A stretch of DNA of 64,000 nucleotides from positions 1-64,000 of the IMG/VR virus record IMGVR_UViG_3300042558_003926; one strand, 5' to 3'. The translations under genes were made by a program, and so were the position numbers. The notes under the pieces were generated by a model that saw only the letters and a program-made list of their open reading frames with translations, did no database searches and was not told the origin of the DNA. Below, piece by piece: positions 707 to 10,206 of the stretch. Position 1 is the first letter of the stretch; each line of letters starts with the position of its first letter.

Positions 707-2923
707 ACAAACCTTGAGGTTAAAGACGAAGGAACTTCTTTAACTACCGCTGCATCCTCAATGAATTTCGTAGGTGCGGGCGTTACTGCAACTGCATCAG
801 GTAGTGCCGTTACTGTTACTATACCGGGTGGATCTATACCTGGATCTAATAATCAAGTAATTACATCTGACGGTGCAGGTGGTGCTGTTGCGGAATCCCT
901 ATTGACATTCGATGGAACTATAACATCCCCTTATCTTAATGTTAATTCAGTAACAGTAGGTAGAGGAGGTAATAACGTTTCCACTAACATATCAGTAGGA
1001 CAGTTAGCTTTCTCTGCCTCTACATCGGGTGGATATAACGTTTCTGTTGGTAGATTAGCATCTATAAATGTAACAGAAGGTGCATTCAATGTTGGGATAG
1101 GTGCAAGAGCTATAAATTCACTAACAACTGGATGTTCAAATGTAGCTATAGGTAGGTCTACATTACAAAATGCTACTAGTGCATGTGATAGTATAGCCAT
1201 AGGAACATATTCCCAGCAATCTTATACTCCTTCAGGTGTTATAGCAATAGGCACATCCGCTTTAGGATGTAATCAGATATCGAATATAGTAGGTATAGGT
1301 AGATCGACACTATTCCCTAACAGAGGATTTCTTAACACAGCAGTAGGACATTTTTCTTTAAGTACAAACGCAACGGGTTCGTATAACACAGCATTTGGTT
1401 ACGCCCCTCTCAAAGCGGTAACCTCCGGATCTAAAAACACGGCAGTAGGTGGTGGATGCGTTTGTCCTCAGATTCTTACTTCAACAAATCTTCCACCATT
1501 ATTCTCTAATATTTATGGAAGTCAAAGCGTAGCTATAGGTACTGCTGCTTTAGCTAAAGGAACAAACTTGAATGAGCTTGTAGCAGTGGGTGTTGGTGCT
1601 TTATATAATAATACATCAGGAACACAAAATACTGCTGTTGGTACTTTAGCTCTTGCTAAAAATTTAAACGGGGTATGTAATATAGCTATTGGTAATAAAG
1701 CTTTAGCAGGTAACAATTCCGGTGGATGTAACATAGCTATAGGATTTGAGGTTCTGTGTTTTAACCAAACTGGAGGTAGTAATATTGGTATAGGTGCAGC
1801 CAATCTCGTTAACAACTGTGTTGGTAGCCACAACGTTGCATTAGGTAGATCTGCACTATACACTAACACTTCGGGATGCGGTAATATCGCTATCAGTAGA
1901 AGAGCATTAGCTTATAATACATACGGTAGTTACAATATAGCAATGGGTAGAGGAGCTATGTACTGCAATACAACAGGATGCCATAACATTGCAATAGGTA
2001 GATCAGCTTTATATACTAACTGTACTGCATGCTTCAATATTGGTATTGGTTACAGAGCTTTAGCTAACAATGACTATAATGGTTATGGAGGTAATAGAAA
2101 TATTGCAATAGGGGTCAAAGCATTGTATAGTGCCCAAGTTACATCCGGAGCAATTGCAATAGGCTATTGTGCTCTGTTTAGCTCTTCGGGAGGAGGTAAT
2201 CTTGCTATAGGTGATTGTTCTCAGGCGTTAACTATAGGAGGAGATAGTAACGTTTCTGTTGGGGGACTCTCCTTATGTGGAAATTTAACTGGTAGTGCTA
2301 ACGTTGCAATAGGTAATAAATCATTTAAAAATAATCAATACGGACAACAAACGGTTGCGGTTGGTCATAATGCTATAGCATACGGATCGGGTCCTTATAC
2401 AAACCAATTAACAGCAGTTGGATACCGTGCGGGTTATTATTTTAGCCAGGTATATCAAATAGCGGTAGGTGCTAATGCTCAAACTTCTAACCAGGCATAT
2501 CACACTGTATGGGGTGCTGCTGCAAACAGCGTTTATAACTGTGTATGGGCAGCATGGACAACAGTATCTGACGCCAGAGATAAAGCCAACATCGAGCCAC
2601 TATCTAGGAATCTTGGTCTTAGTCTCATAAACAAGCTAAACCCAGTCTCATTTAAATGGGATCAGAGACAAAGATACGTAGATAAATGTGGATTTGAGTA
2701 TGGTGAAAAAGATGGCACATTAATTACTGCTCATAGAGAATATGGACTTATAGCTCAAGAACTTAAACAGGCTTTAGATGAATTAGGGGAACAATTTGAT
2801 GCTCTTAAATATAATAGTACACAGGATTCCTATAGATTAACTTATGAAGGATTAATAGCTCCTATAATTAAATCTATTCAGGAACTATCTGCTAGAGTCG
2901 AGTCAATAGAGAAAAAGCTATAA
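2..2923 (+). CDS. Tail fibre/adhesin, 5'-truncated: (Gly-Ser/Thr/Ala-Ser)n collagen-like stalk, YadA/Hep_Hag-like NxAIG beta-roll repeats, C-terminal peptidase S74 intramolecular chaperone
   Basis: The frame starting at nt 2 reads GSSGSSGASGSSGSSGTSG... and runs in frame into the 761..2923 ORF through VKDEGTSLTTAASSMNFVGAGVTA. It has many NIAIG/NVAIG repeats and the S74 motifs SDARDKANI, LNPVSFKW and YGLIAQEL. Confidence 0.85.
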   Translation, partial: GSSGSSGASGSSGSSGTSGSAGSSGSSGSSGSSGASGSSGTSGSSGSSGSSGSSGSSGASGSSGSSGTSGSSGSSGSSGSSGSSGTSGSSGSSGASGSSGSSGTSGSSGSSGSSGSSGSSGSSGSSGSSGSSGASGSSGTSGSSGSSGSSGSSGASGSSGTSGSSGSSGSSGASGSSGTSGSSGSSGSSGSSGSSGSSGASGSSGTSGSSGSSGSSGSSGSSGENGSSGSSGTSGTNLEVKDEGTSLTTAASSMNFVGAGVTATASGSAVTVTIPGGSIPGSNNQVITSDGAGGAVAESLLTFDGTITSPYLNVNSVTVGRGGNNVSTNISVGQLAFSASTSGGYNVSVGRLASINVTEGAFNVGIGARAINSLTTGCSNVAIGRSTLQNATSACDSIAIGTYSQQSYTPSGVIAIGTSALGCNQISNIVGIGRSTLFPNRGFLNTAVGHFSLSTNATGSYNTAFGYAPLKAVTSGSKNTAVGGGCVCPQILTSTNLPPLFSNIYGSQSVAIGTAALAKGTNLNELVAVGVGALYNNTSGTQNTAVGTLALAKNLNGVCNIAIGNKALAGNNSGGCNIAIGFEVLCFNQTGGSNIGIGAANLVNNCVGSHNVALGRSALYTNTSGCGNIAISRRALAYNTYGSYNIAMGRGAMYCNTTGCHNIAIGRSALYTNCTACFNIGIGYRALANNDYNGYGGNRNIAIGVKALYSAQVTSGAIAIGYCALFSSSGGGNLAIGDCSQALTIGGDSNVSVGGLSLCGNLTGSANVAIGNKSFKNNQYGQQTVAVGHNAIAYGSGPYTNQLTAVGYRAGYYFSQVYQIAVGANAQTSNQAYHTVWGAAANSVYNCVWAAWTTVSDARDKANIEPLSRNLGLSLINKLNPVSFKWDQRQRYVDKCGFEYGEKDGTLITAHREYGLIAQELKQALDELGEQFDALKYNSTQDSYRLTYEGLIAPIIKSIQELSARVESIEKKL

Positions 2924-2933
2924 AAAATAAATA

Positions 2934-3755
2934 ATGTCAGTACAAAAAATATTTTATAACGCATCGCTTCCGAGGTCTGGATCAACTTTGCTTCAGAATG
3001 TGATGATGCAGAATCCAGACATCTATTCTACTCCAACTTCCGGGGTTGGTGAGCTATTATTGTCTGCGAGAACTATCTATTCAAACGGTGATGCCTTCAA
3101 AGCTCAGGATCCAGAAGAAATGAAGAAAGCTTTTGGTGGATTCTGTAAGGGTGGGATTTATGGATATTTTAATGCTCTTACGGATAGACCTTATGTTCTG
3201 GAAAAAAGTAGAGCATGGTTAGGTCACAGATCTTTTGTAGACTTTTTCGACGAAAATCCTAAGATCATAGTAATGGTTAGGGATTTGAGAAGTGTATTTT
3301 CATCTATGGAAAAAAACTTTAGAAAAAATCCGCATAAGGATCCCCTGATAGTTAACGGAGCCGAATTGAAAAATATGACTACTCCTGCGAGGATAGATCA
3401 TTTTTCTGTTTCCCCTCCTATTGGTCCTTCTTTAGAGTGGCTGTTCGAATCTGTTCACCAAGGATATGATAAAGACATTCATTTTATTAAATTCGAGGAC
3501 TTTTCTATTGATCCAGAGACAGAGATCAAGAAGATATACAACTATCTAAATCTACCATATTTTAAACACGATTTCGAAAATGTTCAGCAACTAACCCACG
3601 AGAATGATGTGATTCATGGAATATTCGGGGATCATAAAATATCTCCTAAAGTTAGACCAGTTCCCGAAGATTATATTGATATATTGGGTAAAGTAGAGTC
3701 AGATAGATTAAGAAACCACTATGATTGGTTTTATAAAAGATTCAAATATATATAA
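2934..3755 (+). CDS. PAPS-dependent sulfotransferase
   Basis: 5'-phosphosulfate-binding loop LPRSGSTLL, 3'-phosphate motif MVRDLRSVFSS, and IKFEDF..DPE.EIKKIYNYL. Confidence 0.85.
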   Translation: MSVQKIFYNASLPRSGSTLLQNVMMQNPDIYSTPTSGVGELLLSARTIYSNGDAFKAQDPEEMKKAFGGFCKGGIYGYFNALTDRPYVLEKSRAWLGHRSFVDFFDENPKIIVMVRDLRSVFSSMEKNFRKNPHKDPLIVNGAELKNMTTPARIDHFSVSPPIGPSLEWLFESVHQGYDKDIHFIKFEDFSIDPETEIKKIYNYLNLPYFKHDFENVQQLTHENDVIHGIFGDHKISPKVRPVPEDYIDILGKVESDRLRNHYDWFYKRFKYI

Positions 3756-3758
3756 GAT

Positions 3759-4358
3759 ATGCCAGATCCTAAAATCATAGAATTGGAATCTAAGATAGCT
3801 AAGTTAGCAGCTATTATAAATGATCCTACCCCTTTATATAAGGAATACATCTACAAGGATGATGAAAAAAGAATCAAGCCCAATCTTAAATTAAAGCATG
3901 TTGATGAGTTAAATGAAGCTCTAATAAGACAGGCTAATGACGTGGAAGAATTTGTAAATTCAATAAAAGAAGAGATTGAGATACCAGGAGAGATTAAACA
4001 ATCTTTTGAGAATTCTATTAAGGAAAAAGAAACATTCATAAGCAAAGGAAGTGTTAACTGGAAACCAGATGACGGATTCGATCAGCCATCTTTTTATATA
4101 GAAAACAATGCACTTTACTTCAAATTCAAGACAGAAGAACCTATAGATTATGTTGAGATTAATGAAATCTCACCCAAAGGGAAGAGTATTATCACAACCC
4201 AAGGAGGAACAGTAGGGGATGGCGAATTTTTAAAGGTTCCGGTTCTAGTAGATTATCTAGAAAAAGGATCTGCTGGAAACAAATATACATTAGTTATAGT
4301 TCTAGGATCGAATCCGGGTAACCAGAGAAAGGGATTTTTTACTTACGTTTATAAATAA
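3759..4358 (+). CDS. Hypothetical protein
   Basis: 199-aa ORF packed in the operon; no motif recognised. Confidence 0.6.
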   Translation: MPDPKIIELESKIAKLAAIINDPTPLYKEYIYKDDEKRIKPNLKLKHVDELNEALIRQANDVEEFVNSIKEEIEIPGEIKQSFENSIKEKETFISKGSVNWKPDDGFDQPSFYIENNALYFKFKTEEPIDYVEINEISPKGKSIITTQGGTVGDGEFLKVPVLVDYLEKGSAGNKYTLVIVLGSNPGNQRKGFFTYVYK

Positions 4359-4363
4359 ATATT

Positions 4364-4816
4364 ATGATTTATTGGTTTACTGGGCAACCGGGACATGGAA
4401 AGACCGTTTTAGGAAAACTTCTCGTAGAGAAAATTGGAGATGATACGTTTCATATTGATGGAGATCACCTCAGGGAGATATTCAACAATAAGGATTATTC
4501 CGAAACTGGAAGAAGAAAAAATATAGATCTAGCACAAAAGATTGCACATTATTTAGAAAATCAGGGTAAGGATTCAGTGGTTTCCCTTGTCTCTCCTTAC
4601 TTGGATCAAAGAGAGGAGTTTAAAAGAATAATGGGAGATAAACTAGTTGAGATTTATGTCCATACTGAAGAGAAAAGAGGAAGGGAGGAATTCCACGTGG
4701 AAAATTACGAGCCACCCACCGAAAATTTTATAGACATTGATACTACAATAGATAATCCTGAAGATAGTATCATTAAAATAATGTCCAATGAAAAATTACA
4801 TAGCAAAGGCAGATAA
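4364..4816 (+). CDS. cysC: Adenylylsulfate (APS) kinase, compact form
   Basis: IYWFTGQPGHGKT P-loop, IDGDHLR, DYSETGRRKNI, VSLVSPY and YEPP match CysC signature motifs. Confidence 0.85.
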   Translation: MIYWFTGQPGHGKTVLGKLLVEKIGDDTFHIDGDHLREIFNNKDYSETGRRKNIDLAQKIAHYLENQGKDSVVSLVSPYLDQREEFKRIMGDKLVEIYVHTEEKRGREEFHVENYEPPTENFIDIDTTIDNPEDSIIKIMSNEKLHSKGR

Positions 4817-5186
4817 AAAAACATCATCAAACAGTTTACAGTATTCGATGTTTGTTGGTAGGTGGCAACCTTTACACGAAGGACACCAATGGCTTTTTAA
4901 CCAGTCGTTAGAGGAGGGTAAGAACGTTCTGATCTGCATAAGAGATGTTGAGCCAGATGAAAAAAATCCATTTAAACCAGATGAGGTAAAAAGAAATATA
5001 GAGGAATTTTATTCTCATCTGGTTGAATCTAAGAGAGTTAAGGTTATGATTATACCTGATATAGAATCTATAAATTATGGTAGGGGGGTTGGTTATGATG
5101 TCATAGAGCACGTTCCACCATCTGAGATATCAGATATTTCTGCTACTAAGATAAGAGAATCTTTAAAGTCGGAGGGGAAATTATGA
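4788..5186 (+). CDS. Small HIGH-superfamily (cytidylyltransferase-like) nucleotidyltransferase; candidate minimal ATP sulfurylase
   Basis: GRWQPLHEGH (HxGH) and ISATKIRE motifs; overlaps cysC. Confidence 0.75.
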   Translation: MKNYIAKADKKTSSNSLQYSMFVGRWQPLHEGHQWLFNQSLEEGKNVLICIRDVEPDEKNPFKPDEVKRNIEEFYSHLVESKRVKVMIIPDIESINYGRGVGYDVIEHVPPSEISDISATKIRESLKSEGKL

Positions 5187-5632
5187 GTAATAAATTCAAG
5201 AAATATCATATTAGATTTAACACCGTATCTAGATCTGAAGACGATAGATGGAGACTAATTGACGAAGAAGGAAAGGAGACATTGGTTTCCTCCGTAGTTG
5301 TTAATGGTTATTCATATACCACCAAAAACTGGATAGATGAAATAGGTGAATATAAATGGCACGTATCATGTGAAGGATACTGTACCATCACTGATAATGT
5401 AGCTAGAATAGAGACAACTAAGAATGAATCCGCATTAACTAGACATATATTAAAAACGGTATCATATAGAATACTCGGAACTTTAACGACAGTGATAGTT
5501 GCATATTCTTTAGGTGTTCCTTTAGAAATATCTTCCATGCTGGGAATCGGCGAACTTTTGCTGAAACCTGTAATTTATTTCTTGCACGAGAGAGCGTGGT
5601 ATAAATGGATTAGAATAGGAATTAAAAAATAA
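5183..5632 (+). CDS. Membrane protein with C-terminal DUF2061-like domain
   Basis: RHILKTVSYRILGTLTT...KPVIYFLHERAW resembles DUF2061 (KxxSWR...YYxHERxW). Confidence 0.7.
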   Translation: MSNKFKKYHIRFNTVSRSEDDRWRLIDEEGKETLVSSVVVNGYSYTTKNWIDEIGEYKWHVSCEGYCTITDNVARIETTKNESALTRHILKTVSYRILGTLTTVIVAYSLGVPLEISSMLGIGELLLKPVIYFLHERAWYKWIRIGIKK

Positions 5633-5636
5633 ATAA

Positions 5637-6512
5637 GTGGAAAGTTATTTAGTGTGGCACATAGAAGGTGGATTGGGAAAAAACATAGCAGCTACCTCTC
5701 TTATAGAGTCTTTGCATGATAGATACCCGGATCGGAAGATAATTATTGTAGCATCATATCCTGATGTTTTTTTAAATCACAGATTGATCTATAGAGTTTA
5801 CCGAATAGGAAACACACAGTATTTCTATGACGACTACATTAAAAATAAGGACACTTTAGTTTTTAGACATGAAGCTTATTACGAGAGTAATCATATCTCG
5901 AAGAGAAAGCATATAATAGATAGCTGGTGTAAATTAATGGATCTGGAATATAAGAATCAGATGCCAGTTATTAATTTCAATCTGGTTCAGCAGAGAAGTT
6001 CACAGAAATGGATTAGAGAGAAACCAATTTTTTTAATTCAAACAAACGGCGGACCCTTCAATTCAGAATCTGCATATTCGTGGGCCAGAGATATTCCTTT
6101 TGATATTTCTCTTAAAATAGCAGAGAGCATGATTAAGGATTATCACGTAATTCAGATATGTAAACCCTCTTCTAGACAAATCCCAGGTGCCGAAGTAATA
6201 TCCGATCAACTATCACCCATCGACCTTTTTCTTTTGCTAGCTCTTAGCGAAAAAAGACTTCTCATAGATTCTTGTTTACAACATGCTGCATCGGCTTTAA
6301 ACTTACCTTCCGCCGTACTTTGGATAGCTACTTCTCCCGCTAATTTTGGTTATACCCTACACAAGAATATAATTGCAAATCCACCAGAGATTGAACCTAA
6401 ATTACCTAATTCATATCTCTTCGATTATTCTTTTGATGGGGTTGCTTATGAATGTCCATATTATTCTACCGATGAAATGTTTAATGTTGGTGAGATAATA
6501 AAATCAATCTAA
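5637..6512 (+). CDS. GT-B fold glycosyltransferase, GT9/heptosyltransferase-like
   Basis: N-terminal GGLGKNIAAT; C-terminal LIDSCLQHAASALNLPSAVLW resembles the GT9 motif DSGxxHxAxAxxxPxxxL. Confidence 0.7.
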   Translation: MESYLVWHIEGGLGKNIAATSLIESLHDRYPDRKIIIVASYPDVFLNHRLIYRVYRIGNTQYFYDDYIKNKDTLVFRHEAYYESNHISKRKHIIDSWCKLMDLEYKNQMPVINFNLVQQRSSQKWIREKPIFLIQTNGGPFNSESAYSWARDIPFDISLKIAESMIKDYHVIQICKPSSRQIPGAEVISDQLSPIDLFLLLALSEKRLLIDSCLQHAASALNLPSAVLWIATSPANFGYTLHKNIIANPPEIEPKLPNSYLFDYSFDGVAYECPYYSTDEMFNVGEIIKSI

Positions 6513-6515
6513 TCC

Positions 6516-6546
6516 GGAACTTTAACCCGATAAAAACTATAAAATA
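6516..6546 (+). promoter_or_regulatory. Putative middle (ECF-type) promoter
   Basis: GGAAC-N16-CTATAAAATA upstream of 6559. Confidence 0.55.
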
Positions 6547-6558
6547 AAAAAACAAAAA

Positions 6559-6834
6559 ATGGAAGAAACTATTAAATTGCCAGAAGAATTGGTATTGGAA
6601 GTTCAGGCTCTTAAAGATGAACTGATGGATAATGTTATTAAAGTTGGAAGACTTAGTGTACAGAAATCTTTTTATGAAAAAGATCTTGAAATGATTAACT
6701 CCCAGCTGGATAATCTTCATGACCAAGCCGCTTTAATATACCAGAAGGAGGAGGAATTACAGAAAAAGGTAATCTCCGAATATGGTAACGGTAAACTGGA
6801 TTTTGAGTCCGGTATTTTTACTAAAAACTCCTAA
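6559..6834 (+). CDS. Small coiled-coil hypothetical protein
   Basis: Heptad-rich, ends in EYGNGKLDFESGIFT. Confidence 0.7.
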   Translation: MEETIKLPEELVLEVQALKDELMDNVIKVGRLSVQKSFYEKDLEMINSQLDNLHDQAALIYQKEEELQKKVISEYGNGKLDFESGIFTKNS

Positions 6835-6918: not shown

Positions 6919-9408
6919 ATGAGCTTCTATCCGGAGAATAAATTTCCTAAAGACGGATCCCCAGTCAGAAACACAAACGGGGAGCAATATAATTTATCTA
7001 ATCAGAGATATAATTATCACGATGGACTTCAGAATACTTCTAAAGTTAAGAATTCATCTGTAGATAATCTTTTTTCCACCACTGGAGCAGCAGAAGCTAG
7101 ATCCAAACAAATAGGCTGTGGTGGATATCACCAAGTTACAGTAGATGGTAAAACATTCTATAAGCCATGCGAAACAGCTGAGTACTATGATCTAAGAATA
7201 GAACAGCTAGAAAGTGCATTAAACTTCACGTATATAGGTAATTACCGTGTTTTAACATGGGATAAACCATTTGAATATGTTACTTCTTTTAACGGATGGA
7301 TAATAGATGCCTCCAATAGTAACAACACGGCATCTATATTAAACGGGAATGATATATCTATAGATTTCAGATATAGTATAGATGGCACAACTTGGTCTTT
7401 ATGGACAAATGTAGGTACAGCTTTAGGTGGGTTAACCAATGAGTATTCTGAGCTTTTTGATATACCTTTAGATCCTAATAATAAGTTTTATCCCGAATTT
7501 AGATTTACGTGTGTTCTAGTTAATGACGACGGAACAATAGTTTATAACACGGAAGAGCCTATAGATCCTTCTATAGTTATAGTTAACTTCGAATTGGATT
7601 TGACCTATCAGGTTGCTCCGGAAGTGGTGATATACAGACCAGCACCGATATGTACTGATGAGGTTTCTACTAGACCTATACTTTTCTCCAACTGTAATTT
7701 TACCTTTAATCCTTATGCTGTTAATAGAGCATTAAACATGTATCAGGATTTAAGTTTAATGGTTAATAATGTTTTTGGACTAGAAGTTAATTATTATTCG
7801 GTACAACCTCAAGCTAGAGGAAAAGATGTGGTACTTAAAGAGTATACCATATTCGACGTAGTTGACGAGAAATGTATAAAGGCACTAGTTCCTCAAAATC
7901 AATTCCCGGATAATAAAATAAACTTTGATCCATTCGGTCTACAATTCGAAGAACCCTTTGAAATACAAATAGATAAGAGATACTTCGAATCTATATTCGG
8001 AAGAGGATCACAGCCAAGGAAAAGAGATATTATCTACTTCCCTCTAACTAACAGAATATATCAGATTAACTCTACTTATCTCTTCAGGGACTTTATGAAC
8101 GCTCCTGTTTATTTTAAGATAGAGCTTAAAAAATATACACCAAGATCTAACACTTATTTCCAAGATCCAGCATACAAGGAAGAGCTTGATGGTATATCTC
8201 TTACTACTAGTGATCTCTTTGGTGAGGAAGTTCATGCGGAGGAGATCAAAAGTTCAAAACCACAACAATATGCTACAACAATAACACAGATGTCTCAGGA
8301 CCCGATTAGATCTTATGTTTATAAGGATCTTTCTATTATAGAGTATGATTTAAATAATAACTGGACTATAGTCCTGAATAATTATTATGATTTGTACCAG
8401 TCTTTTGCTGATGATTATGAATTTACCTATGATCCTGGTAGATATAGAAATGCTGTTAGATATAAGGTGTTACCTAAATCAGATTCAACAACAGAACTGG
8501 CTTATACATGTTGGTTTAGTCTTAAGAATTTTTACGATAATCAACAACTTGCAAGAAGATCGTATCCGGTTATAAATCTAACCCTGGAGTCATCAACTGA
8601 TGAACTATTATATTTCAATAGCTACCCAAGAAAACATAATTTACAAGTTTGGCAATCCTATGATTCCAATCCTGAAGGATATGTTGCAATCAAGGGAGAC
8701 AAACTGCACTCTGGCGGATACGAGGTTAGAACGGTTATAGACGATTATCGATTTGCAGTAGATAACAATTCAACCGATTTCTCATTAGGAACTATCATTT
8801 GGAAAATGCAGAAAGCACAGAGCAGAAACTTAATTAGTGGATTATACCTTAATGATTTAGAAGAAATAAAGGGAATTAGAATAGATTTAATCCATTCCGG
8901 AGTTATGGATGAGTTAACAAATAATTTCCTAGAAGAAGGAAGTATAGTCATCCGCTTGAATGACACCATAATAAATTCTCCACTACAGTTTGTACCAGAG
9001 TTTGGTGATTGGTATGGGGTGGTCGTCAACTTCTCTAATGTTTATAAACAGATATCCGCAAATATTTGGGAGATGACATACGATCCAACAGATCCGAACG
9101 AGCAAACTAGTAAGCTTAAGAAAGTTCATGAATCGGTTAGAATGTTTACAAATAATATAATATTCGAAGCACCTACCGATGTGGTAACTGATACGCTTAG
9201 TCCTTTCTATGAAACTGATAACAATTCTTATAAAATCTACACCGGTCCTATATGGCTTAGTAATGTTAGATTATTTAAGAATATGATAGATATAGATACG
9301 CAATCCACTGTATTGAATCAAAATACGGTGAGAGATGCACAGTTAGCTCATATTATTGATAACGCAAAACCGCTTCTGAATATTCCGAAGTTTGCAAGAA
9401 ACAGATAA
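6919..9408 (+). CDS. Neck/head-tail connector protein (T4 gp14-like core with large N- and C-terminal extensions)
   Basis: FDPFGLQFEEPFEIQIDKRYFESIFG..SQPRKRDIIYFPLTNRIYQI resembles the gp14 core; lies just before the terminase genes. Confidence 0.65.
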   Translation: MSFYPENKFPKDGSPVRNTNGEQYNLSNQRYNYHDGLQNTSKVKNSSVDNLFSTTGAAEARSKQIGCGGYHQVTVDGKTFYKPCETAEYYDLRIEQLESALNFTYIGNYRVLTWDKPFEYVTSFNGWIIDASNSNNTASILNGNDISIDFRYSIDGTTWSLWTNVGTALGGLTNEYSELFDIPLDPNNKFYPEFRFTCVLVNDDGTIVYNTEEPIDPSIVIVNFELDLTYQVAPEVVIYRPAPICTDEVSTRPILFSNCNFTFNPYAVNRALNMYQDLSLMVNNVFGLEVNYYSVQPQARGKDVVLKEYTIFDVVDEKCIKALVPQNQFPDNKINFDPFGLQFEEPFEIQIDKRYFESIFGRGSQPRKRDIIYFPLTNRIYQINSTYLFRDFMNAPVYFKIELKKYTPRSNTYFQDPAYKEELDGISLTTSDLFGEEVHAEEIKSSKPQQYATTITQMSQDPIRSYVYKDLSIIEYDLNNNWTIVLNNYYDLYQSFADDYEFTYDPGRYRNAVRYKVLPKSDSTTELAYTCWFSLKNFYDNQQLARRSYPVINLTLESSTDELLYFNSYPRKHNLQVWQSYDSNPEGYVAIKGDKLHSGGYEVRTVIDDYRFAVDNNSTDFSLGTIIWKMQKAQSRNLISGLYLNDLEEIKGIRIDLIHSGVMDELTNNFLEEGSIVIRLNDTIINSPLQFVPEFGDWYGVVVNFSNVYKQISANIWEMTYDPTDPNEQTSKLKKVHESVRMFTNNIIFEAPTDVVTDTLSPFYETDNNSYKIYTGPIWLSNVRLFKNMIDIDTQSTVLNQNTVRDAQLAHIIDNAKPLLNIPKFARNR

Positions 9409-9411
9409 TTT

Positions 9412-10206
9412 ATGCCTAGAAGAAAACCGAAACCAGAGAAAGTTGTCGAGGAAAAAATAAAGGAAAGTCTCGATTCTATAATAATGCAGGAGGCCCTTGA
9501 GAATATACTTCCTGACAGCGACGAACTACCAAGATTAAAGACAACGGATTTAATGGATTTTTCAGGAGAAAAATCTACTGCTTTATCTGATGCTAAGGCT
9601 TTACTTGATACTATAACAAAATTCTACATGGACGACACGAGCATGAGCGAGGCCTCGCACGTGGAGTTTAAAAAGAAGGTTGATGCGATGAATTTATCAT
9701 CGATGATGTTTCAGCTTAAAAGTGCTCAGCATGCTATAACAAAAATACTAGAGGAGATAGATCTTGGTAATATGCACCCTAGACTTTTTGAAGTTCTGGC
9801 TCAATTGCAATCGCAGATCATGCAGATGCCTAAAGACTACCAGGCATATCTCGAAAAGATGGAACAGAACTATAAGAAGACAAGGATAGAAGTTGATGAG
9901 AAAAAGCATTCTCAGGGTATAGTAATGGACCAATCCTCAGGAGATTCGGGATTTTATGTTAGTAACACTGCGGTTACACAAGACGGAGGACTTAAATCCA
10001 GAGGAACACGTGGAATTATGGAGGGACTGAGAGATATTATAGGTTCCGAGGTGGTGGACGTAAAACCCGAGGTACTTGATCCGAATGCCGTAGTAAATGC
10101 TAGAGAAAAGAAAATATTGGATTCGCAGAATCCTAATAATAAATCACATTTTAACGAGGAAGATCAGGAGGAAGATTTTTCTATAGAAGATGATATACTA
10201 GAATAA
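9412..10206 (+). CDS. Terminase small subunit (gp16-like)
   Basis: HPRLFEVLAQL resembles the T4-like PRAxEV motif; TAATG coupling to the large subunit. Confidence 0.7.
   Translation: MPRRKPKPEKVVEEKIKESLDSIIMQEALENILPDSDELPRLKTTDLMDFSGEKSTALSDAKALLDTITKFYMDDTSMSEASHVEFKKKVDAMNLSSMMFQLKSAQHAITKILEEIDLGNMHPRLFEVLAQLQSQIMQMPKDYQAYLEKMEQNYKKTRIEVDEKKHSQGIVMDQSSGDSGFYVSNTAVTQDGGLKSRGTRGIMEGLRDIIGSEVVDVKPEVLDPNAVVNAREKKILDSQNPNNKSHFNEEDQEEDFSIEDDILE

Follow-up and report, generated by a model that had tools for sequence, protein, structure and literature searches.

Is the first step of PAPS synthesis encoded beside the orphan APS kinase gene of a lake-water jumbo phage? In order to address this question, we analysed a 64,000-nt window (positions 1 to 64,000) of IMG/VR record IMGVR_UViG_3300042558_003926, in which a small APS kinase gene and a sulfotransferase gene are found, but no gene for Sat (PF01747) or CysD (PAPS_reduct, PF01507) was detected, either in the window or in the whole 289,651-bp virus record, which CheckV rates complete. 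An initial annotation had proposed that a 132-aa HIGH-motif enzyme fills this missing step. Our comparative analysis supports this inference, although the protein is not a shortened Sat, and the activity itself is inferred from genomic evidence rather than from enzymology.

Sequence and predicted fold

We first examined the ORF and its upstream neighbour. The ORF at 4788..5186 (+) encodes 132 aa and carries GRWQPLHEGH at residues 24-33 (4857..4886, +) and ISATKIRE at residues 117-124 (5136..5159, +). It overlaps the upstream 150-aa gene (4364..4816, +) by 29 nt (4788..4816, +), which suggests translational coupling. The upstream protein matched Pfam APS_kinase PF01583 at 7.8e-16 over profile positions 4-146 of 152, as well as NCBIfam adenylyl-sulfate kinase models, and was the only APS_kinase match in the genome. 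It keeps the P-loop, DGDxLR, YSxxGRxxNI and SPY motifs, but lacks the usual lid segment, with RGRE where canonical CysC has RDPKGLYKKA. A blastn search of 2900-6600 against the phage collection gave no match. More than 8000 clusters at 90% identity matched the 132-aa nucleotidyltransferase (hereafter NT), the top 120 at E of 5.8e-54 or lower, and these were mostly 132 aa long and aligned from residue 1, so that the overlapping N-terminus is conserved as protein. At 50% identity there were 1204 representatives. A later start at ATG 4848 (M21) was rejected as the sole start, since residues 1-17 are conserved as protein in relatives at 60-97% identity, although cellular homologues start near residue 17. 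One 218-nt contig from a lake metatranscriptome matched 4784-5001 exactly, which is too little to claim transcription, and DNA carry-over is possible.

The NT matched CTP_transf_like PF01467 at 1.5e-5 (25.7 bits, cut-off 21) and TIGR00125 at 32.2 against 27.7, placing it in the HIGH-signature nucleotidyltransferase superfamily. Among 48 family representatives, H30 and R123 are invariant, and G24, R25, G32, H33, S118, T120 and I122 are at least 90% conserved. The AlphaFold model (mean pLDDT 89.9) showed the Rossmann-like alpha/beta fold of this superfamily, with only 17 poorly modelled residues before strand 1. VIA-align gave Z 10.0 to NMN adenylyltransferase (NMNAT) 1f9a, 9.7 to PPAT 4nah, 9.2 to NadM and 7.5 to T. 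thermophilus ATP sulfurylase, and the Foldseek probability to NMNAT was 1.00. In agreement with this, the PDB profile search gave 1f9a at 1.1e-14. The protein shares GRxQPxHxGH, the NPF(T) turn (N60-P-F62) and the (I)SxTxxR motif with archaeal/NadM-type NMNATs (PDB 1f9a, 1ej2, 2qjo), and some family members also share the C-terminal W..V.P..V helix; this shows common descent, not shared substrate. Intriguingly, however, the family profile aligned to 1f9a only at residues 4-75 and 110-154 (profile positions 11-81 and 91-137), so that residues 76-109 of 1f9a, about 34 residues of the second-substrate region, have no counterpart. They are replaced by a 9-residue loop with the family-specific motif YGRxVGY (Y97-G-R-G-V-G-Y103; 5076..5096, +), in which G98 is invariant and R99, V101, G102 and Y103 are at least 90% conserved. 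A further family-specific motif, I51-R52-D53 (4938..4946, +), lies at the end of strand 2, where the profile alignment to M. jannaschii NMNAT put 'vrd' opposite 'IGS', and R52 is at least 90% conserved. Scores against the NMNAT models TIGR01527 and NF002243 were far below the cut-offs (24.4 against 181.2 and 29.6 against 127).

We then asked whether the NT could be a shortened Sat, and found that it could not be assigned to that family. It scored 19.1 bits on PF01747 against a cut-off of 24.3, covering only profile positions 29-91 of 212, and the whole-genome search found no match at E <= 0.001. The Sat motifs expected by the initial annotation did appear in real Sat domains aligned here (FQTRNPxHRAH, ISGTxLR), in ORFs of 362-440 aa when not fused. 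In the NT, however, the HxxH part is present but QxRN is replaced by the NMNAT-type GRxQ, and the HPxxG, AGPREA and GRDHAG motifs and the N-terminal PUA-like domain are absent. The nearest resemblance, YGRGVGY against VGRDHAG, was not aligned by hhalign, which aligned the family to 12 Sat domains over only 36 C-terminal columns, around ISGTxLR, at 48% probability. No Sat chain appeared among the best 60 PDB chains listed in the profile search, of 68 at E <= 10. The NT also differs in fold from CysD, which has the PAPS_reduct/ATP-PPase fold and a CysN GTPase partner. If the inference of activity holds, the NT is an independent recruitment within the superfamily that also contains Sat.

Association with APS kinase

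To investigate the genomic context of the family, we compared 79 viral and 75 cellular loci. In the viral loci, cysC lay directly upstream on the same strand in 70 and within two genes in 8 more. In the cellular loci it was directly upstream in 54, within two genes in 7 and fused in 6, whereas in three Nitrospiraceae genomes the NT was not next to cysC. Overlap of directly adjacent pairs was the rule, with 59 of 70 viral and 31 of 54 cellular pairs overlapping. The initial annotation had suggested a search for fusions with CysC, and this was positive. Of the 40 family representatives of at least 200 aa, 30 carried PF01583 (best 9.5e-69), in both orders, CysC-NT and NT-CysC, and phrog_10255 is such a fusion. 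NCBI and JGI name the fusions only as adenylyl-sulfate kinase. The kinase partner is really an APS kinase, since a canonical CysC pairs with the NT in Flavobacteriales and in one further genome (G021), at E 1e-58 to 1e-70 against a fused CysC that scores 230.7 bits on PF01583, and at 226-242 bits on PF01583 in whole-genome searches. Structure prediction of a complex of CysC with the NT gave no verdict (score 0.00), which is neither for nor against binding. A Pfam tally of 148 neighbours of the cellular loci showed mixed polysaccharide and housekeeping genes, and no single third partner.

Distribution relative to Sat and CysDN

Of 49 NT-bearing genomes from at least six phyla, only 5 had Sat and 1 had CysD, so that 43 had neither. 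Most of these genomes are MAGs or SAGs of unstated completeness, but one of those with neither is a closed 0.97-Mb chromosome. In an 81-genome sample of the phylum of this chromosome, 51 of 55 genomes with cysC but without the NT had Sat or CysD, whereas the 3 NT-bearing genomes had neither. Fisher's exact test on 6/43 against 51/4 gave p = 5e-18, although the genomes are not phylogenetically independent. An order-level sample of Flavobacteriales was uninformative, with only 1 of 81 genomes carrying the NT, and we therefore turned to the family level. In one Flavobacteriales family (41 genomes), the 10 genomes with both cysC and the NT had no CysD or Sat, and all 26 genomes with cysC but without the NT had CysD. 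Importantly, the two arrangements occupy the same slot of a conserved sulfated-polysaccharide cluster in this family. The flanks hold GcvH and a TonB-like gene on one side, and a 235-aa protein, a CysQ-like phosphatase, a Wzx flippase, two or three sulfotransferases and Wzy on the other, and the slot between them holds either cysC-cysD-cysN or cysC-NT.

PAPS also appears to be consumed for sulfation. Five NT-bearing genomes tested all carried Sulfotransfer_3 genes (1-9 each), and none carried a PAPS_reduct gene. In the window itself, a 273-aa PAPS-dependent sulfotransferase (2934..3755, +), the likely consumer of the PAPS, lies 600 nt upstream of cysC. It matched Sulfotransfer_3 at 2.8e-13, Sulfotransfer_1 at 4.6e-10 and phrog_27463, and was the only Sulfotransfer_3 match in the phage genome. 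Homologues accompany the cysC-NT pair in 13 of 79 viral loci. In many phages, however, the gene after the NT is a DNA methylase and no sulfotransferase is nearby.

Discussion

Taken together, these findings suggest that the 132-aa protein represents an unnamed family of minimal HIGH-signature adenylyltransferases that most likely act as ATP sulfurylases, converting ATP and sulfate to APS and pyrophosphate. The co-translated APS kinase would phosphorylate APS at once to PAPS, which pulls the unfavourable first step, and the pair would be a two-gene PAPS synthase of about 280 residues. Residues R52 and R99 are inferred to take part in binding sulfate, and coupling or channelling with CysC is likewise an inference. 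We found no earlier description of this family or of a third ATP sulfurylase in the open-access papers and preprints searched.

Since the nearest characterised proteins are NMNATs, and some sources name homologues as such, one could suppose that the NT is an NMN or NaMN adenylyltransferase which, with the small P-loop kinase, rebuilds NAD during infection, in the manner of NadR (PDB 6gye and 8x7f, both among the fold matches), which also joins an NMNAT domain to a P-loop kinase. We consider this very unlikely. The missing segment 76-109 probably carries nicotinamide-contacting residues in archaeal NMNATs, no NAMPT or Nudix partner lies nearby, and NT-bearing genomes already have 5-7 other PF01467 genes, including ones of NadD and CoaD size. 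Nor does this reading explain the complementary distribution with CysDN and Sat, or the replacement inside a sulfation cluster. It is similarly improbable that the NT is a sugar- or polyol-phosphate nucleotidyltransferase (HldC/RfaE-II or TagD-like), making for example ADP-heptose. TagD, of which type enzymes are of similar size, Fom1 cytidylyltransferase, HldC and a Thermoplasma LPS-core protein did appear among the fold matches at Z 6.5-8.2, the phage encodes a GT9-like protein (see below) that would use an ADP-sugar, which an adenylyltransferase could also make, PfkB kinase and histidine-phosphatase genes lie near the pair in some Marinimicrobia, and polysaccharide genes are common neighbours. 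However, the GT9-like gene accompanies the NT in only 15 of 79 viral and 2 of 75 cellular loci, whereas cysC does so in 78 and 67. This reading explains neither the fusions to APS kinase in both orders nor why the NT sits exactly where cysDN sits in sister genomes, and it leaves 43 genomes with cysC and sulfotransferases but no source of APS.

A role as a partner of APS kinase other than ATP sulfurylase is also improbable. The NT could be a nucleotide-binding scaffold or regulator, like the inactive Sat-like domain of Thiobacillus denitrificans APS kinase (PDB 3cr8 was among the fold matches), or could adenylylate some other small anion or phospho-compound that the kinase then 3'-phosphorylates. 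In this respect, it is notable that 6 of 49 NT-bearing genomes also have Sat or CysD, and that in one Acidobacteriota contig an NT-CysC fusion, whose NT has H in place of the conserved R99, sits beside cysD- and cysN-like genes. Yet carrying two ATP sulfurylase types at once is not unusual, as four genomes (G069, G073, G085 and G116) have both Sat and CysD. The catalytic HxGH and ISxTxxR residues are invariant or nearly so, which argues for an active enzyme, and a scaffold could not supply APS in the 43 genomes without Sat or CysD, nor in the 10 Flavobacteriales genomes where the NT replaces cysDN.

Compared with Sat, the NT is about one third the size, with a core of 112-117 aa, and is closer in fold to NMNAT and PPAT, but the proposed reaction is the same, both are often adjacent to or fused with APS kinase in either order, and neither needs a GTPase. 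Compared with CysDN, it appears to do the same job with one gene of about 0.4 kb in place of two genes of about 2.2 kb and without a GTP-driven pull, so that on this proposal the pull must come from CysC and pyrophosphatase. The fusions of 250-355 aa mirror both domain orders of bifunctional PAPS synthases (APSK-ATPS in animal PAPSS, Sat-CysC in bacteria and fungi), but their sulfurylase half belongs to a different family, and the smallest pairs (141-aa mini-CysC plus 112-aa NT) are less than half the size of known PAPS synthases. The chemistry also follows the logic of PPAT (CoaD) plus dephospho-CoA kinase (CoaE), fused in COASY, where a HIGH-type adenylyltransferase makes an adenylylated product that a P-loop kinase phosphorylates on the ribose 3'-OH; the kinase here, however, is an APS kinase by profile score, and the context is sulfation rather than CoA synthesis.

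ATP sulfurylase is the entry point to all sulfate metabolism, and apparently only two types, Sat and CysDN, are known. It is likely, though without biochemical proof, that the NT is a third, independently recruited type with an NMNAT-derived core of about 115 residues, forming with a mini APS kinase the smallest known PAPS synthase. It would supply PAPS in streamlined marine and freshwater lineages (SAR406/Marinimicrobia, Poseidoniales archaea, some Flavobacteriales, Patescibacteria) and in hundreds of phages. This would explain orphan cysC and sulfotransferase genes in abundant ocean and lake microbes that are now scored as unable to activate sulfate, and viral cysC genes, currently counted as helpers of assimilatory sulfate reduction (for example PMC10914622), would really be parts of complete sulfate-activation modules used for sulfation. 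It would also offer a compact two-gene PAPS generator for enzymatic sulfation, and a clean case of a cofactor-biosynthesis scaffold being cut down to act on an inorganic anion.

Other genes of the module

The GT9-like and DUF2061 proteins described below are likely accessories for sulfating a glycan or surface structure. A 199-aa protein of unknown function (3759..4358, +) between the sulfotransferase and cysC had no Pfam or PHROG match and a homologue in only 1 of 79 related viral loci, and is thus probably not a core part of the module. PADLOC found no meaningful defence-system match for any of the six module proteins. The 291-aa protein at 5637..6512 (+) had no Pfam match, but its AlphaFold model (pLDDT 85.7) showed a GT9 (ADP-heptose heptosyltransferase-like) GT-B fold, with WaaF 1psw at 3e-10, 3tov, WaaC and TibC as the best Foldseek PDB matches, and its viral homologues occur mostly together with the sulfotransferase. 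The 149-aa DUF2061 membrane protein (5183..5632, +; DUF2061 domain at residues 89-139, PF09834 at 1.1e-13) overlaps the NT stop by 4 nt and is present in 29 of 79 viral cysC-NT loci and several cellular ones. It is fused to CysC in one locus and to the NT in one representative, and follows a CysC-NT fusion in another locus. A DUF2061 gene also sits in a Mesorhizobium nod locus with nodH, nodP and nodQ.

Gene organization around the NT

The sequence examined is the first 64 kb of a 289,651-bp virus record that CheckV rates complete, and it recurs in many lake-water metagenomes. Between a collagen-like repeat protein ending at 2923 and structural and terminase genes, we found a tight run of genes on the + strand. 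These encode a sulfotransferase (2934-3755; Sulfotransfer_3 at 2.8e-13), an unknown 199-aa protein (3759-4358), a 150-aa APS-kinase-like protein (4364-4816; PF01583 at 7.8e-16), the 132-aa protein of interest (4788-5186), hereafter called NT, a DUF2061 membrane protein (5183-5632), and a 291-aa protein (5637-6512). The motifs GRWQPLHEGH (residues 24-33) and ISATKIRE (residues 117-124) are exactly as described in the initial annotation, and the NT ORF overlaps cysC by 29 nt, so that this observation is confirmed. Directly upstream of the sulfation module, a very long ORF (2-2923) opens with about 230 residues of collagen-like G-S-S/G-T-S triplets, followed by an Ala/Gly/Asn-rich repetitive region, and is probably a fibre protein. 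We further found that a 218-nt contig from a lake metatranscriptome run matches the start of the NT gene exactly (4784-5001), this being the only part of 2900-6600 seen in that RNA library.

Family and predicted fold

In order to place the NT among known enzymes, we first compared it with family models. The NT passes the generic CTP_transf_like model (25.7 bits against a cut-off of 21), but hits the Sat model only below the cut-off (19.1 against 24.3), and NCBIfam gave only weak NadM/NMNAT-type hits far below their cut-offs. The family is very large, with more than 8000 matching clusters at 90% identity and 1204 representatives at 50% identity. Forty-eight representatives share the motifs GRWQPxHxGH, IRD, D(E)xNP(F/T), IPDIxSVNYGRxVGY, and ISATxIR. 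H30, G98, and R123 are invariant, and R25, R52, and R99 are at least 90% conserved. Databases call the family cytidylyltransferase-like, NMNAT, or kinase.

The AlphaFold model is confident (pLDDT 89.9) and shows a very small Rossmann-like domain. The nearest solved structures are archaeal NMNAT (Z 10.0), PPAT (9.7), and NadM (9.2), with T. thermophilus ATP sulfurylase at Z 7.5. A family profile hit NMNAT 1f9a at 1.1e-14, but in two pieces, with profile positions 11-81 aligned to residues 4-75 and positions 91-137 to residues 110-154. About 34 NMNAT residues thus have no counterpart and are replaced by the YGRxVGY loop, and the IGS found after strand 2 in NMNAT is IRD here. In the archaeal NMNAT structures, the missing piece probably carries nicotinamide-contacting residues. 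In contrast, hhalign against 12 real Sat catalytic domains aligned only the ISxT tail, at 48% probability. The protein is therefore an NMNAT-like offshoot of the superfamily, and not a truncated Sat.

Linkage to APS kinase

PHROG 10255 already spans an APS-kinase-like half and this NT. Of the 40 family representatives of at least 200 aa, 30 carry PF01583 (best 9.5e-69), in both orders, CysC-NT and NT-CysC, and such proteins are named by NCBI and JGI only as adenylyl-sulfate kinase. Among 75 loci from cellular genomes in which an NT ORF was found, cysC lies directly upstream in 54, within two genes in 7, and fused in 6, whereas none was found in 8. Most adjacent pairs overlap. The cellular genomes include Marinimicrobia/SAR406, Flavobacteriales, Crocinitomicaceae, Poseidoniales and other archaea, Patescibacteria, and others. 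In several SAR406 genomes, a PfkB-family sugar kinase and a histidine-phosphatase gene lie on the opposite strand just downstream of cysC-NT (8331-9985 of the Marinimicrobia locus L008 and similar loci).

Two kinds of CysC pair with the NT. One is the canonical enzyme of about 200 aa. The other is a form of 141-155 aa, as in the phage, which keeps the P-loop, DGDxLR, GRxxNI, and SPY motifs but lacks the lid. The phage enzyme (4364-4816) is of this mini form, lacking the RDPKGLYKKA lid segment of canonical CysC and having RGRE instead, and the form is shared by phages, SAR406, Poseidoniales, and Patescibacteria.

Complementary distribution with Sat and CysD

To investigate whether the NT occurs where known ATP sulfurylases are missing, we searched for Sat and CysD. 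The phage has neither anywhere in its genome. Of 49 NT-bearing cellular genomes, 5 have Sat and 1 has CysD, so that 43 have neither, including a closed 0.97-Mb chromosome (G010). In an 81-genome sample of the phylum of G010, 58 genomes have cysC. Of the 55 that lack the NT, 51 have Sat or CysD, often fused or adjacent to cysC, whereas the three with the NT have neither. Fisher's exact test of the 49 NT-bearing genomes against these 55 without the NT gave p = 5e-18, with the caveat that the genomes are related to one another. Five NT+ genomes all carry sulfotransferase genes and none carries a PAPS_reduct gene, so PAPS there is used for sulfation, not assimilation. They also carry 5-7 other PF01467 genes of NadD and CoaD size, so the NT is not their only candidate NMNAT.

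The cleanest test came from one Flavobacteriales family of 41 genomes, in which 11 have the NT, 36 have cysC, 26 have CysD, and 1 has Sat. Among the cysC+ genomes, the 10 with the NT have no CysD or Sat, and all 26 without it have CysD. We then retrieved four of these loci and found that the flanks are conserved, with a large protein, GcvH, and a TonB-like gene on one side, and a 235-aa protein, a CysQ-like phosphatase, a Wzx-type flippase, two or three sulfotransferases, and Wzy on the other. The slot between them holds either cysC-cysD-cysN or cysC-NT. In a cluster whose purpose is plainly to make and use PAPS, the NT stands exactly where the known ATP sulfurylase stands in sister genomes.

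Proposed function and mechanism

Taken together, these findings suggest that the NT is probably an ATP sulfurylase, as the initial annotation had inferred, and we hold this functional assignment with fairly high, though not full, confidence. We propose that the NT binds ATP through HxGH, R25, and ISxTxxR, residues known to be important in NMNATs, for which PDB entries of R11, H19, and R136 mutants exist. It would present sulfate in the pocket left by deletion of the NMN-binding segment, probably through the family-specific R52/D53 and Y97-G-R99 (inferred), and would form APS and pyrophosphate. The co-translated or fused APS kinase would convert APS to PAPS, giving the thermodynamic pull that the GTPase of CysN gives elsewhere, as inferred from established Sat-CysC biochemistry. 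The reaction and the superfamily are both known, but this would be a new, minimal, and independently recruited enzyme family. Full-text searches of open-access papers and preprints found no description of this family or of a third ATP sulfurylase, and viral cysC genes are treated in the literature as assimilatory-sulfate-reduction auxiliaries (PMC10914622).

In the phage, PAPS would feed the neighbouring sulfotransferase. The 291-aa neighbour (5637-6512), which has no Pfam match, has a predicted fold like that of GT9 ADP-heptose heptosyltransferases (WaaF 1psw at 3e-10), and it travels with the sulfotransferase in a subset of phages and in two MAG contigs (L010 and L037). DUF2061, a small two-helix membrane domain, is a recurrent partner of the cysC-NT pair. 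It occurs in 29 of 79 viral loci, is fused to CysC in a Chitinophagaceae MAG (locus L075, 7213-8004) and to the NT in one representative, and follows a CysC-NT fusion in locus L179 (9034-9261). A DUF2061 gene is also reported inside a Mesorhizobium nodH/nodP/nodQ locus. The phage copy (5183-5632) has an extra 88-residue N-terminal part. Together these suggest sulfation of a glycan at the membrane, and DUF2061 may be an unrecognised membrane component of sulfation pathways.

Alternative explanations

Some observations count against this reading. The nearest characterised relatives are NMNATs, and six NT+ genomes also have Sat or CysD, although carrying two ATP sulfurylase types is not rare, since four genomes in the control sample have both Sat and CysD. 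In three Nitrospiraceae genomes the NT is not beside cysC. The NT homologues of the Nitrospiraceae MAG loci L046, L048, and L049 are longer (165-178 aa), are not adjacent to cysC, and lie next to a Glycos_transf_3 gene, and their genomes carry a canonical Sat-CysC fusion. They may be a functionally diverged branch. In an Acidobacteriota MAG contig (L178, 5117-8259), an NT-CysC fusion lies divergently beside cysD- and cysN-like genes and near giant glycosyltransferase-sulfotransferase fusions, and its NT has H for R99, with YGHDVGY in place of the conserved YGRxVGY. Furthermore, in a large group of phage contigs the gene straight after cysC-NT is an N6/N4 DNA methyltransferase (for example 5372-6235 of locus L150; PF01555 at 3.9e-33), and no sulfotransferase is nearby. 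We considered that the NT might instead be an NMNAT, an enzyme making an ADP-sugar, or a scaffold. However, each of these readings fails to explain the replacement of cysDN and the APS-less genomes, and we regard all three as unlikely, the NMNAT reading slightly more so than the other two.

Other nucleotidyltransferase-like genes were also noted. The phage has a second small PF01467 protein (141 aa, motif AGNFDVIHPGY) next to thymidylate synthase, at 175191-175616 of the complete virus record (1486-1911 of locus L081), and the same type of gene (132 aa) sits between cysC and the NT in several Bacteroidetes single-cell genomes (locus L059, 7599-7997). In addition, a 668-aa protein at 113460-115466 of the virus record (52-2058 of locus L082) combines a weak RNA-ligase match at its N-terminus with a weak HIGH nucleotidyltransferase motif near residue 484.
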